A DNA stretch of 64,000 nucleotides from Octopus bimaculoides (lineage: Eukaryota), in the NCBI RefSeq assembly GCF_001194135.2, contig NC_068981.1, positions 20,407,580-20,471,579 of the forward strand. The letters run 5' to 3'. The translations under genes and the position numbers were made by a program. The notes below the pieces were generated by a model that did no database searches, was not told where the DNA came from, and saw only the letters and a program-made list of their open reading frames with translations. Position 1 is the stretch's first letter, and every line of letters begins with the position of its first letter. Positions 1,188 to 55,208 of the stretch are shown here, one piece after another.

Positions 1188-1368
1188 CTTCCTCGTGGAA
1201 TTACTCAACAAGATGATACTTTATATTACACTGATTGGTCAACAGAAGAGGATACAGAAGGCTTCATATTCCAGTATAACTTAAAGAAGTCCACTCTCAA
1301 TAAAAGCCCTCTAATTACAGGAATTAAACCCACAGGACTTCATTATTCCCATCGACAAATTTCTTCAG
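1188..1368 (+). CDS. Exon A: last blades of a YWTD beta-propeller
   Basis: Acceptor tctccag|, donor TCAG|gtaact, phase 0->1. LPRGITQQDDTLYYTDWSTEEDTEGFIFQYNLKKSTLNKSPLITGIKPTGLHYSHRQISS contains YYTDW and PTGL propeller motifs. Confidence 0.9.
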
Positions 1369-1502
1369 GTAACTCTTACTATCTTTTTTGCACCTTTTCA
1401 TTATAGTTACCTTCTGTCTGTTCTTCTAACACACACACACACACGGTTACTCAACCTGCAACACATATCAACTAAATCTGTATTATATACTCATACATAA
1501 GT

Positions 1503-1640
1503 GCAGACATTGCTGTAAAGTTAGGAAGTTTGCTTCCCAACTACTTGATTTCAGATTCAGTCCTATGACAAGTGTCTTCTGTTATACACTAAAGCCTTGT
1601 GAGTGGATCTGATGGACAGAAACTGAAAGAAGCCTGTTAT
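1503..1640 (+). mobile_element. Degenerate tRNA-derived SINE (AAGCCTTGTGAGTGGA...GAAACTGAAAGAAGCC family)
   Basis: Shares its body with copies at 24412-24995, 12490-12700 (minus) and 33065-33150. Confidence 0.6.
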
Positions 1641-2048
1641 TTGCCCCTCTCTCTCTCTCTCTCTCTCTCTCTCTCTCTCTCTCTCTCTCTCTCTTTCTCT
1701 CTCCTTTCCATTTTTCACCACCTGATGTAGCTCTGTACCTCGTGTACTACAAGACACCTATATCTGTCCCTCAGTACTACTCCTTCCTCAGTTGAGAGGT
1801 CTTGTCTTGCAAGTTACTTGGTGACCTCACTGCCACTGGTGTCACATAAAAGTACCCTGTACATTCTGTAAAGTGATAGGCATCAGTAAGCGCATCCAAT
1901 CATAGAAGCCATACAAAAGCAGCCTTCTGACTTGCCAGTTCCTGTTGAATCAAGCGACCCATGACATTATGGAAAATAGATATTAAACAATGAGGATGAT
2001 TATATATATATGTATATATGTATGTGTGTGTGTATATGTGTGTGCATA

Positions 2049-2929
2049 CTGGGTGCAATTGGTAAATTGTCGCCATTTTATATTTTTAATTTCACAGATG
2101 TGCATTGTTTGTTTTTGTTTTTGTTTTTGTTGGCTACGGTACAGTAGAATCAGTCGGGTACCATCTGTGAGAAAAACAGCACCATGATGCAATTCACCCT
2201 ACCAGAAATTTGGAAATGACATGCTGTACTGTTTGGCATTCGTGCCGGAAGCTCCAATACAAACTTTGCAGAGTGTTTGGGTTTCAATTTGAGGAGAGAT
2301 TGTCTCCAAAACATATACCAAGAGTAATAAAAATCAAACCTCATGATGTTTAGAGTGATCACTAGTGATGGCAATGTTACGCCTCCATTTATCTTCCTAC
2401 ACAGCCTCAGACACAACACGGAAGCCTACATCAAGTGCTTGGAGGAGGTAGTGCTGCCCTTGGGTCAAGAAGGTGGCTGCTGGAAGACCTTTGTCTGGCA
2501 ACAGGACTCTCTGCACCATGCCACACAAGCTGGAGATCCCAGTCATGGCTGTCAGACAATCTCTGCAACCACATAACCCCTAACATCTGGCTACCTAACT
2601 CCCCAGACTGTAACCCACTTGATTATTATGTGTGGAGCACAATTGAGCAAGAGACCCTCAAAACTCCTTGTAACACCAAATATGAACTGAAGGCAAGGAT
2701 TATGGTAGCATTCACCAATTTAAACAAGGAAACCATCTAGATGAGTTGCAGGAGATTCCAAAGTCTTCTGGAGGCCGTGGTTGAAGCCAATGGTGATTTT
2801 ACTGAATAAATTTACTCTTTAGTATTTCAAGATATTTTTATGTAATTTTGGTAAATATATCTGTTAAAATGACATGTCAGTGTTATTTTCATTTTTGCGT
2901 AATTTAGACAATATATTCACCACATCCTG
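2049..2929 (+). mobile_element. Deleted Tc1/mariner-superfamily element (maT/rosa-like), copy 1
   Basis: TA-flanked degenerate TIRs (ctgggtgcaattggtaaattgtc ... gacaatatattcaccacatcctg). Broken transposase frames include WQQDS and WLPNSPDCNPLDYYVWSTIE. Confidence 0.85.
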
Positions 2930-3077
2930 TATTTGTGTGTGTATGTGTATATATGTATATATATGTATGTATATATATGTATGTATATAATATATGTGTG
3001 TGTATATATATATATATACATGTGTGTGCGTATATATATATATGTGTGTGTGTGTGAGAATGGATGCATGTATATAT

Positions 3078-52860: not shown

Positions 52861-53048
52861 GCAACGTCTACCTAAAACTGAAATTCGTAGCATTCTGGAG
52901 GCTTTTGAACAAGAACTTGCCTATGTGGCCGAACTTTTCTCAATCAATGTACATGACCGAGAATATAAATCTGTTCCTGGAAGTGTTAAAGCATCAGCCC
53001 CTTATTGGCAGTGTAAATCTGGTGAAATGCTGCAAGATGAATACTGCA
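52861..53048 (+). CDS. Exon O: second half of linker leading into Cys repeat
   Basis: atcatag| ... TGCA|gtaagt, phase 2->1. QRLPKTEIRSILEAFEQELAYVAELFSINVHDREYKSVPGSVKASAPYWQCKSGEMLQDEYC ends in CxxGxxxxxxxC, as seen before Eph-like repeats. Confidence 0.88.
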
Positions 53049-54002
53049 GTAAGTTACTTCTTTTCTTCTATGTCTTCAACTATTGTTTCTTTTACTCTTG
53101 TTTCTATTTCACATCCTCACATATACACACACAGCCCCCAAATACCCTTTAATTGTTATGCTCTCAGACACACACACACACACACACACACACGATCATA
53201 TATGTATGCACTTTCATGCATACTTGGCTCAAGCAACATACACAACAATCAAATATATTCACAGATACTCCCTATAACCTTCACCATAAGATCTTCGTAC
53301 TATATTCATCGATGCACAACTAACACACATACACACACACTTCATGCAAGTACTTCCACACACATATACCTTAATAGCGCACTTGCTCACAGTTACTTCC
53401 TTGCTCTAGCACACATCGAACTTCTTTCCCTGCCTTCACTTCTGGTCACTCTAACCTTTCACCATTTTCAACATGACCTGACACAAATTAAAATGCATTT
53501 CTCCATTGTCGTCATTTTCCCCACATTTTTTATGCTTCTGTTTCATTTTTTGTAACTAATAATTACACTTCGTTTTCATTTTACTTTCTGTACTGTTATA
53601 TTTGTCATTATTTTTAATCACATGTACACACAGTCACACACACACACACACAGTCACACACAAACACACACACAGTCACTAGGTCACGGGTTCAATTTCT
53701 TGATGGGGCAGTGAGTCATGTTCTTGAGTAAAACACTTCATTTCACATTGGTCCAGTTCGCCTTTTGGTGGAGAATATTGGCCTGCCCACCTAGCCAGCA
53801 GGATGGTGTCATTTGAAGGCTAAAACAATGCAAAACGCATTGTGATTAGCGATGTGTAACAACATCTGATAGCCTGGTTGGTCACGTGATCACATAATAT
53901 ATATATACACACATACACACACTCATCATACACATGCATACATTCACACACTCAAACTCACATACTCACGCTAATCTCTTCTTTCATTTGTATATTTGCC
54001 AG

Positions 54003-54155
54003 TTCCTTGCCCCCCTGGTTCAATGTTGAATGTCACATCACAGAGGTGTACTTTTTGTATGGTTGGTTTCTACCAAGACAAAGAAGGCCAAACCAGCTGT
54101 AAACTCTGCCCTGATGGTGTCAGCGCAGCAGAAGGCGCTACCAGCCTTGAATATT
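54003..54155 (+). CDS. Exon P: Eph-receptor-like (GCC2/GCC3) Cys repeat
   Basis: tttgccag| ... TATT|gtaagt, phase 1-1. IPCPPGSMLNVTSQRCTFCMVGFYQDKEGQTSCKLCPDGVSAAEGATSLEY matches CxxGxYQDxEGQxxCKxCP..GATS. Confidence 0.94.
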
Positions 54156-54825
54156 GTAAGTACTTACACATTGATTTCTGTATTCACATACACAAACACA
54201 CACTCTGTGTGTGTGTGTGTGTGTGTGTGTGTGCGTGTGTTTCTTTCTCTCTCTCTCTCTCAATCTCAAGCTCTCTCTCTTTATAATATATAAAATGAAT
54301 GAACAAAGACAAGAAAGGACGAAGAGGGACAAGTTTTCACAATGATGTTATTAGTTTCTTGCTTTGGAAAGAAAAAGGAAAAATGTGTATACTAATGTGT
54401 ATACAAATAATTAACATAGACAGCGGTGTGCACACACACACACACACACACACAATATGTAAATAGATTGTTATCCCTCTCTTTTTCTCTCTCACTCTCT
54501 CTCTCTCCCTTTCATTTTCTCTCTCTCCTCCTTTCTCTTCCCCTTCTCTTTCTCTCTCTCTCTCCCTCCCTCTCTCACACATACACACCCTTTTTAAGTT
54601 CACTACAAGAATGGGGAAATGGGGAAAAAAACAGGTTTCATAAATTGCAGTTTTCTAAATTTCAACATCATAATCATCACTACCATCATCCCTATCATCA
54701 CCATCATCATCATCACCCCTAATCAGCACCATCATCATATCATTCCATCAGTACCATCATCAATCTTTTATTCCAATCAAGGCATTCTGTATTCTATATT
54801 CTCTCTGCATCTCTTTGTCTTTCAG

Positions 54826-55208
54826 GCATCTCCATACCAGCCATTGATGAAATGAGTAAATTCCTCATTATTACTACCTGCACGTTTGGCTTTGTCTTCC
54901 TCTGTCTTGTGATCTTCATGTACCTTCAGTACCAGCGTCAGCAACGGAAAGCAAGTAATCTCAAAGCAGCACCAACCCCAAGGAATACAACAACAAGTGT
55001 GTATGTTGCTCCTCCTCCATTCCCCCGTGTCAAGCCAGTGAATGGCAGTTTTGAGACTCGAGACTACATGTACGTTCATGAGTATGAAGACATAGAGAAT
55101 GCTTCCCAGGTATCAAAGATGCCAAACCCCAATATAGATGCACTTTATCGAATTCCGCCACATATGCAGCGAAGACTGGCTTCCACAGAAAATATCTATG
55201 ATGACTGA
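54826..55208 (+). CDS. Exon Q (terminal): transmembrane helix and Tyr-rich cytoplasmic tail
   Basis: ctttcag| phase 1. CISIPAIDEMSK-FLIITTCTFGFVFLCLVIFMYL-QYQRQQRKASNL...STENIYDD*. A ~22-residue hydrophobic run is followed by basic residues. Confidence 0.92.

Follow-up and report, generated by a model that had tools for sequence, protein, structure and literature searches.

Which protein is encoded by the long chain of exons that runs through a 64,000-nucleotide stretch of the Octopus bimaculoides genome (contig NC_068981.1, forward strand, positions 20,407,580 to 20,471,579; hereafter the window), and is it the product of one gene? A preliminary description made from the letters alone had read 17 exons between window positions 1188 and 55208 as a single chimeric receptor, in which an LRP-type ectodomain of YWTD propellers and EGF modules is fused to a block resembling the protein SVEP1 and is anchored in the membrane. 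We find a membrane-anchored mosaic protein encoded by one gene, with the domain order as that description gave it, and we regard this gene structure and architecture as highly probable. Judged by sequence, the protein belongs to an old receptor family that extends across the lophotrochozoans, and the family is uncharacterised and already predicted under misleading names.

The exon chain and the case for one gene

The exons were located by tblastn with the Argonauta hians protein P0001 as query, which recovered 16 of the 17 coding blocks, all on the + strand and in the order of the protein, while the low-complexity mucin block was taken directly from the + strand open reading frame (ORF) 34283-34471. 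A scan of the junctions, in which AG/GT borders and an open frame were required together with the closest agreement with the orthologue, gave a single solution for each junction, with canonical AG...GT borders at all 17 exons. The spliced frame of 3396 nucleotides is continuous and encodes 1131 amino acids followed by the stop codon. The chain begins and ends exactly where the preliminary description had placed it, and both motifs quoted there (HYECVC...CPNNTYK and RYKRS...WNIT) occur in the spliced protein. These 17 exons form the 3' 62% of the gene, whose counterpart in O. sinensis spans about 718 kb. The window is AT-rich (35% GC), and tRNA and Rfam scans of it returned no matches.

Seven assembly gaps interrupt the window. 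Six lie within 1188-55208 and all of these are intronic, two each in intron 4 (11872-11881 and 13240-13879), intron 7 (27913-28552 and 29607-29977) and intron 12 (45931-46030 and 46624-46721), while the seventh (56574-56978) is downstream of the gene. Since the orthologues carry no extra residues at the junctions of the gap-bearing introns, no exon is hidden in the gaps and the frame is continuous across them.

The window protein aligns with residues 467-1599 of the A. hians protein at 91.9% identity with two gap columns, both in the mucin stretch, and with O. sinensis XP_029642142.2 ('LRP4-like isoform X1') at 99.0% identity over 1131 residues with one gap column. For O. sinensis there are single RefSeq models and for A. 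hians a single deposited model of the whole chain. Two O. bimaculoides fragment models, P0049 and P0050 (XP_014788256.1), are 100% identical to the window protein. Agreement at these levels greatly exceeds what chance could produce. The latter is a 369-residue entry named 'signal peptide, CUB and EGF-like domain-containing protein 1' (SCUBE1) that corresponds exactly to the C-terminal 369 residues, encoded by exons 13-17 (47321-55208); the older O. bimaculoides annotation had thus split and mis-named the gene.

This split, in which 'SCUBE1' covers exons 13-17 only, and the six gaps inside the span of the chain are the two points in favour of an annotation or assembly artefact, in which a propeller gene and a neighbouring SVEP1/SCUBE-like gene have been read as one. 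Transcript-type sequence argues strongly the other way. The cuttlefish-type orthologue P0002, which clusters with a Sepia pharaonis 'LRP4' protein, is a single uninterrupted 5.3-kb frame of 1757 residues on contigs of about 6 kb from two sequencing runs, and the contigs of about ten further Logan members of its cluster are of similar size. The part of the octopus gene in the window alone requires 16 introns, so these intron-free contigs must be derived from mRNA, and they join the propellers with the HYR/Eph-like/transmembrane block in one frame. In addition, the fused order is identical in five other genera from three phyla, the octopus frame is continuous at every junction with all gaps intronic, and the supposed boundary is marked by neither a stop nor a start nor a signal peptide. 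The possibility that transcripts would assign the propeller exons (A-G of the preliminary description) and the remainder (H-Q) to two separate genes is rejected on the transcript-type contigs and the conservation across phyla; we give the artefact a negligible probability, and both halves belong to one gene.

Domain order and distribution of the family

Domains were assigned with Pfam, tested exon by exon with cut-offs. The window opens within the second propeller. Exon 1 (1188-1368, with its AG acceptor at 1186-1187 and a GT donor) encodes the last YWTD blade of propeller 2 (window residues 1-60, aligned by tblastn to P0001 residues 466-526), with the YYTDW motif at 1224-1238, and exon 2 (3888-4028) encodes the EGF-like module that closes this propeller (FXa_inhibition 22.6 bits and EGF 16.7 bits, both below cut-off). 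The third six-bladed YWTD propeller is encoded by exons 3-6 (5843-25468, as 5843-6020, 10883-11119, 16835-17025 and 25262-25468; Ldl_recept_b 35.9 bits), and is closed by the EGF module of exon 7 (26634-26753; EGF 21.5 bits, at cut-off, and FXa_inhibition 29.3 bits). Exon 8 (30530-30673) adds a further, EGF_3-like module (EGF_3 26.3 bits, just under cut-off) terminating in HYECVCAAGFQGNGEVCK. The EGF-type matches of exons 2, 7 and 8 are thus weak to borderline. Exon 9 (32525-32671) encodes the first Ephrin-receptor-like (Eph-like) cysteine-rich domain (Ephrin_rec_like 26.7 bits, above cut-off), and is followed by the cassette exon 10 (34305-34469), which encodes by composition a Thr/Ser/Pro mucin stalk (69% S+T+P).

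On the membrane-proximal side of the stalk the preliminary description had placed two HYR domains and a sushi domain, and these assignments stand unequally. HYR domain 2 (exon 12, 43933-44172) is a strong match at 60.1 bits, whereas HYR domain 1 (exon 11, 43057-43320) is divergent and scores 16.0 bits (E 0.015), below cut-off, and exon 13 (47321-47524) encodes a degenerate sushi-like domain with six cysteines and no tryptophan, which has no Pfam match and is supported by hhalign at 95% over its N-terminal 31 columns only; its C-terminal half is predicted to be helical, with a low predicted local distance difference test score (pLDDT) in a three-domain model. Exons 14-15 (50417-53048, as 50417-50669 and 52861-53048) encode an unannotated linker, predicted by a linker-only AlphaFold2 model to be an alpha/beta domain, with no credible Pfam family. 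Exon 16 (54003-54155) encodes the second Eph-like (TNFR-like) cysteine-rich domain (Ephrin_rec_like 43.6 bits), which adjoins the membrane, and exon 17 (54826-55208) encodes the transmembrane helix (54861-54926), a cytoplasmic tail of 86 residues that is acidic and rich in tyrosine, and the stop codon.

Two of these exons are absent from individual database models. Isoform X2 of O. sinensis (P0047) lacks exactly the mucin exon (residues 516-570), and in an O. vulgaris model precisely the HYR1 exon (residues 571-658) is missing, either through real splicing or through a model error. As exons 10 and 11 have 165 and 264 nucleotides, which are whole numbers of codons, skipping of either keeps the frame.

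The part of the protein upstream of the window can be read from the orthologues, in which inspection of full-length sequences identifies three propeller-EGF units, with Ldl_recept_b scores of 150-179 bits compared with 35.9 bits for the window. In Owenia, Lingula and Patella a signal peptide leads directly into propeller 1. Upstream extension had been proposed as the way to a signal peptide and any LDLa repeats; through the orthologues the signal peptide is found, but LDLa repeats are not. The full-length layout, as read from the orthologues, comprises a signal peptide, three YWTD propeller-EGF units, an EGF module, an Eph-like domain and an alternatively spliced mucin stalk, followed by two HYR domains, a degenerate sushi domain, the alpha/beta domain, a second Eph-like domain, the transmembrane helix and a tyrosine-rich tail.

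Most or all of the layout, in the same order, is present in three gastropods (Patella vulgata, P. caerulea and Nucella lapillus), one bivalve (Sinanodonta woodiana), one annelid (Owenia fusiformis) and one brachiopod (Lingula anatina). For Nucella and Sinanodonta the models lack part of the N-terminal region, and Lingula has no Pfam HYR match. This distribution disposes of the suggestion that the receptor is a novelty of cephalopods or molluscs and points to a receptor family that is old and lophotrochozoan-wide. Its members are listed in databases as 'uncharacterized', 'hypothetical', 'HYR domain-containing', 'LRP4/6-like' or 'SCUBE1', none of them a name for a family with this architecture, and nothing relevant came from searching the literature for this architecture or for the cephalopod gene. 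The proposal that no named family has this architecture therefore holds; of the proposal that the receptor is undescribed, the part that stands is that it is uncharacterised, since RefSeq models already predict it. Apart from the linker, all of the modules are known domains, and receptors of mosaic build are common.

Beyond the lophotrochozoans, the amphioxus protein P0005 (locus L003, Branchiostoma lanceolatum, GCA_035083965.1 CM068863.1) consists of two propeller-EGF units followed by a long mucin, a pair of HYR domains and a sushi domain, with which it ends. Because the 10 kb downstream of this gene contain no linker, Eph-like or transmembrane coding sequence, we do not extend the complete architecture to chordates. 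A 217-residue propeller model lies upstream of P0005 and may belong to the same gene. Word-indexed homologue searches gave few matches, and the 22-sequence profile of the sushi-linker-Eph-like cassette (exons 13-16) retrieved a single fragment by that route.

The linker domain, the membrane helix and a proposed mode of action

The linker encoded by exons 14-15 has as its sole Pfam listing GDA1_CD39 (E 0.042, 12.9 bits, well below cut-off). An exhaustive hidden Markov model search with a sushi-like plus linker profile against 1.84 billion representative proteins gave only 32 matches, none of them a protein of SVEP1 length. Among linker relatives, P0034 and P0038 (RefSeq 'SVEP1-like') are membrane proteins of about 860 residues in which HYR and sushi repeats precede the same cassette, and P0037, an amphioxus protein matched by the linker profile, has an EGF-sushi-linker-C-type-lectin order. 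The AlphaFold2 model of the linker alone (pLDDT 88, predicted template modelling score 0.80) describes a ferredoxin/SEA-like alpha/beta sandwich with predicted elements E6-17, H25-42, E49-59, E73-84, H90-110, E112-115 and E118-122, a strand-helix-strand, loop, strand-helix-strand-strand topology in which the 13-residue loop between strands 2 and 3 is modelled with a pLDDT of 54. The best structural matches of this model are generic ferredoxin-like domains, while the three-domain model gives weak matches to the Gpr126 ectodomain, which contains a furin-cleaved SEA domain, and to the MUC16 SEA domain.

This exposed loop carries a multibasic site of the proprotein-convertase type, R873-Y-K-R876 followed by S (codons 50614-50625, + strand). 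A multibasic or dibasic motif is found at the aligned position in most relatives, including RYRR in the cuttlefish type, KIRR in Patella, RRKRKKR in Owenia, KVKR in P0031, RRKRR in P0034, KRKKR in P0038 and RKRR in P0037. In Lingula a basic insertion of about 140 residues (P0035 residues 1362-1503) is placed exactly at this loop. We infer that a convertase may cleave inside the folded linker domain, leaving two associated subunits. In the Nucella lapillus protein P0003 the C-terminal half of the linker occurs a second time, in incomplete form, upstream of the HYR block (residues 544-652).

Among molluscs, conservation is highest in the transmembrane helix (54861-54926) and its flanks. Identity over the transmembrane and juxtamembrane residues is 98% with the cuttlefish type, 88% with Patella, 78% with Nucella and 61% with Sinanodonta, while the ectodomain modules show 30-45% identity with those of gastropods. 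A helix that is nearly invariant in sequence suggests a partner within the membrane. The octopus tail contains YVAPPPFP (55002-55025), EYEDI (YEDI at 55083-55094), LYRIP (55143-55157) and the C-terminal ENIYDD (55188-55205), all on the + strand, and the mollusc tails retain these as YVAPPPxP, [DE]YEDI, YRIP and a C-terminal TENxxY[DE][DE]. Src-family SH2 domains prefer pYEEI, which the YEDI sequence resembles.

Taken together, these features favour, with some confidence, a conserved lophotrochozoan type I receptor in which three LRP-type propellers are carried on a mucin/HYR stalk, and which is probably processed by a convertase and signals through its tyrosine-rich tail. In such a receptor the distal propellers would bind a protein ligand directly, as they do in LRP4/5/6 and nidogen. 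During passage through the secretory pathway a furin-type convertase would cut the RYKR loop before the serine, and the surface form would then be a pair of subunits joined through the sheet of the alpha/beta domain, much as in SEA domains and the heterodimerisation domain of Notch. Either the binding of ligand or the loss of the large subunit would be relayed through the transmembrane helix to the tail, where the tyrosines of [DE]YEDI, YRIP and the C-terminal Y[DE][DE], once phosphorylated, together with YVAPPPxP could dock SH2/SH3-type adaptors. For the cleavage and signalling steps themselves we put the chances at about even.

Several observations weigh against this proposal. The 5' third of the O. 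bimaculoides gene lies outside the window. Nucella has a degenerate version of the multibasic site (PPKRH) and Sinanodonta has none, so that cleavage may not be universal. Among the 50 best structural matches to the linker-only model there is no SEA domain. The mollusc transmembrane segment and tail are not shared by Owenia or Lingula, and the signalling part may for this reason be specific to molluscs. Moreover, two tail sequences, YEDI and YMYV, also match the YxxPhi endocytic signal. This last point belongs to a different reading, in which the propellers, as in members of the LDLR family and pro-EGF, capture ligand for uptake through AP-2, the YxxPhi matches serve as internalisation signals instead of docking sites for phosphotyrosine-binding partners, and convertase cleavage is incidental maturation. 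Propellers of the LDLR/LRP type on a single-pass protein with a short tail would suit a cargo or clearance receptor of this kind. However, the family has neither LDLa ligand-binding repeats nor NPxY, its conserved tyrosines lie in acidic contexts, including the extreme C-terminus, that are more typical of kinase substrates, and the extreme conservation of the transmembrane helix would be unexpected for a simple cargo receptor. We therefore judge an endocytic function unlikely, at perhaps the level of a minority reading, and prefer the convertase-processed signalling receptor.

The introns also contain retroelement remnants and other repeats. In intron 4 a reverse-transcriptase fragment (13216-14154, - strand; Pfam RVT_1 45.7 bits) runs into the gap 13240-13879 and is retroelement debris outside the gene product. 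Two related + strand ORFs in introns 1 and 4 (2343-2740 and 11700-12175), ending in ...NSPDC(N/Y)(P/S)L(D/E)YYVW...ETLKTPCNTK(Y/D)EL(K/R)ARI..., have no significant Pfam match and look like tails of one transposon family. ORFs in intron 10 (37841-38422, + strand) and intron 5 (20677-21033, - strand) resemble the C-terminal part of non-LTR retrotransposon proteins, with a weak zf-RVT match (E 0.017). At several gap edges, including those of 27913-28552, 29607-29977 and 56574-56978, ORFs read IYIYIY, indicating a TA-rich microsatellite.

Comparison with known propeller proteins, SVEP1, SEA domains and thyroglobulin

The receptor resembles the LDLR/LRP family in its tandem YWTD six-blade propeller-EGF units within a type I membrane protein. 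In a PDB sequence search with propeller 3 and its EGF module the closest entries are LRP2, LRP4, LRP6 and LDLR, with E-values for single propellers of 1e-19 to 2e-26 (LRP4 2.4e-26), compared with only 1e-6 for nidogen. The membrane-proximal half of the octopus protein, unlike that of LDLR/LRP proteins, consists of HYR, sushi-like, alpha/beta linker and Eph-like modules. No LDLa repeat (PF00057) was found in the window protein or in the O. sinensis, cuttlefish-type, Owenia, Lingula and Sinanodonta orthologues, no DxSDE signature was found in members, and no member has NPxY in its tail or a PPP[ST]P motif. The 'LRP-type' label given to the ectodomain thus holds for the propellers but does not extend to LDLa, NPxY or PPPSP.

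RefSeq names such as 'LRP4-like' and 'LRP6-like', together with LRP2, LRP4 and LRP6 as the best solved-structure matches of the propeller, would be expected of an LRP4 or LRP5/6 orthologue acting as a Wnt or agrin-type co-receptor. These names, however, derive from the best match of the propeller region only. LRP5/6 (arrow) has four propeller-EGF units, three LDLa repeats and PPP[ST]P in its tail, whereas the octopus family has three propellers and lacks the others, as well as NPxY, in every member; its HYR, Eph-like, mucin and linker modules have no place in LRPs. LRP4/LRP5/6 orthology is rejected on these missing defining features, and we consider it very improbable. On sequence features, the protein stands outside the LDLR/LRP family in spite of its LRP-type propellers.

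Propeller-EGF units without class A repeats are also found in pro-EGF, nidogen and Drosophila cueball, of which pro-EGF and cueball are single-pass membrane proteins like the octopus receptor. To our knowledge, HYR, Eph-like, mucin and linker domains occur in none of the three. Molluscs, annelids and brachiopods have a conserved receptor family that public annotation masks as LRP4-like, LRP6-like or SCUBE1, which bears on any inference of Wnt or lipoprotein receptor repertoires in these phyla. The family indicates that propellers of the LRP type do not need LDLa repeats to work and can stand on a HYR/Eph-like stalk, and it includes a domain for which there is no Pfam model.

The likeness to SVEP1 lies in the described order of Eph-like domain, two HYR domains, sushi domain, cleaved region and Eph-like repeats ('similar to thyroglobulin type 2'). 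SVEP1 is cut into a 115-kDa N-terminal and a 270-kDa C-terminal fragment (PMC10281526), and the furin site of the human protein lies shortly before residue 997 (bioRxiv 10.1101/2025.03.17.643633). By description, the octopus RYKR (then S) sits in the linker that would correspond to this cleaved region. The RefSeq 'SVEP1-like' proteins P0034 and P0038 share the sushi-linker-Eph-like cassette with the octopus protein. SVEP1 differs in being secreted, in starting with a VWA domain and in continuing with EGF, pentraxin and about 30 sushi domains, all of which the octopus family lacks; VWA, pentraxin and Pfam sushi give no match in any family member, and the PDB search returned no HYR-containing chain. 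The colinearity with a SVEP1 block that had been proposed has indirect support, from the SVEP1 literature and the 'SVEP1-like' proteins, with which it is consistent.

With SEA domains, and likewise with the heterodimerisation domain of Notch, the linker shares, in its model, a predicted strand-helix-strand-strand-helix-strand order near the membrane and, in the hairpin that joins strands 2 and 3, a putative processing site. It differs in being separated from the membrane by an Eph-like domain. Moreover, no Pfam SEA match is obtained at E <= 1, and the loop carries RYKR (then S) in place of the GSVVV autoproteolysis motif.

Finally, the cassette resembles part of thyroglobulin. The 22-sequence profile matches bovine thyroglobulin residues 1197-1496 (PDB 7n4y, 7qtq) as one stretch (E 4e-12), and thyroglobulin is the only significant Foldseek match of the three-domain model (E 1.5e-8). 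The two share the module order of a sushi-like domain, an alpha/beta region and Eph-like/type-2 cysteine repeats; the thyroglobulin hinge starts with a fairly canonical sushi-like cysteine/tryptophan pattern and, with the type-2 repeats, is colinear with exons 13-16. Against the family profile the thyroglobulin sushi plus hinge scores 22.3 bits, a value reached by none of 2000 shuffles (maximum 4.8), while the hinge alone scores 8.6 bits (shuffle maximum 7.0). Most of the sequence score, however, comes from the Eph-like/type-2 part, and in the alignment thyroglobulin shows no multibasic site at the loop in question. Because the thyroglobulin match is lost from the PDB search when the Eph-like part is removed from the profile, and because a phmmer search started from the single thyroglobulin sequence recovers no more than the Eph-like/type-2 part, we lower the kinship of the cassette with the thyroglobulin hinge and type-2 repeats to a lead. 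The linker-only model compares with thyroglobulin at E 1.7e-3 and a template modelling score of 0.43, no better than generic ferredoxin-like domains. In accounts of thyroglobulin evolution the hinge is a non-repetitive insertion for which no source is named, and these papers make no mention of a likeness to sushi-like domains or to the cassette (bioRxiv 10.1101/2025.06.18.660348; PMC13078365).

We offer tentatively, as somewhat doubtful but worth stating, the idea that the cassette is an old mobile metazoan module and the shared source of the thyroglobulin hinge/type-2 region and of the furin-cleaved linker of SVEP1. If so, the family would supply a concrete invertebrate source for part of thyroglobulin and a structural context for the cleavage of SVEP1, and the module would make the octopus receptor a two-subunit, sheddable protein comparable to Notch or the SEA mucins.

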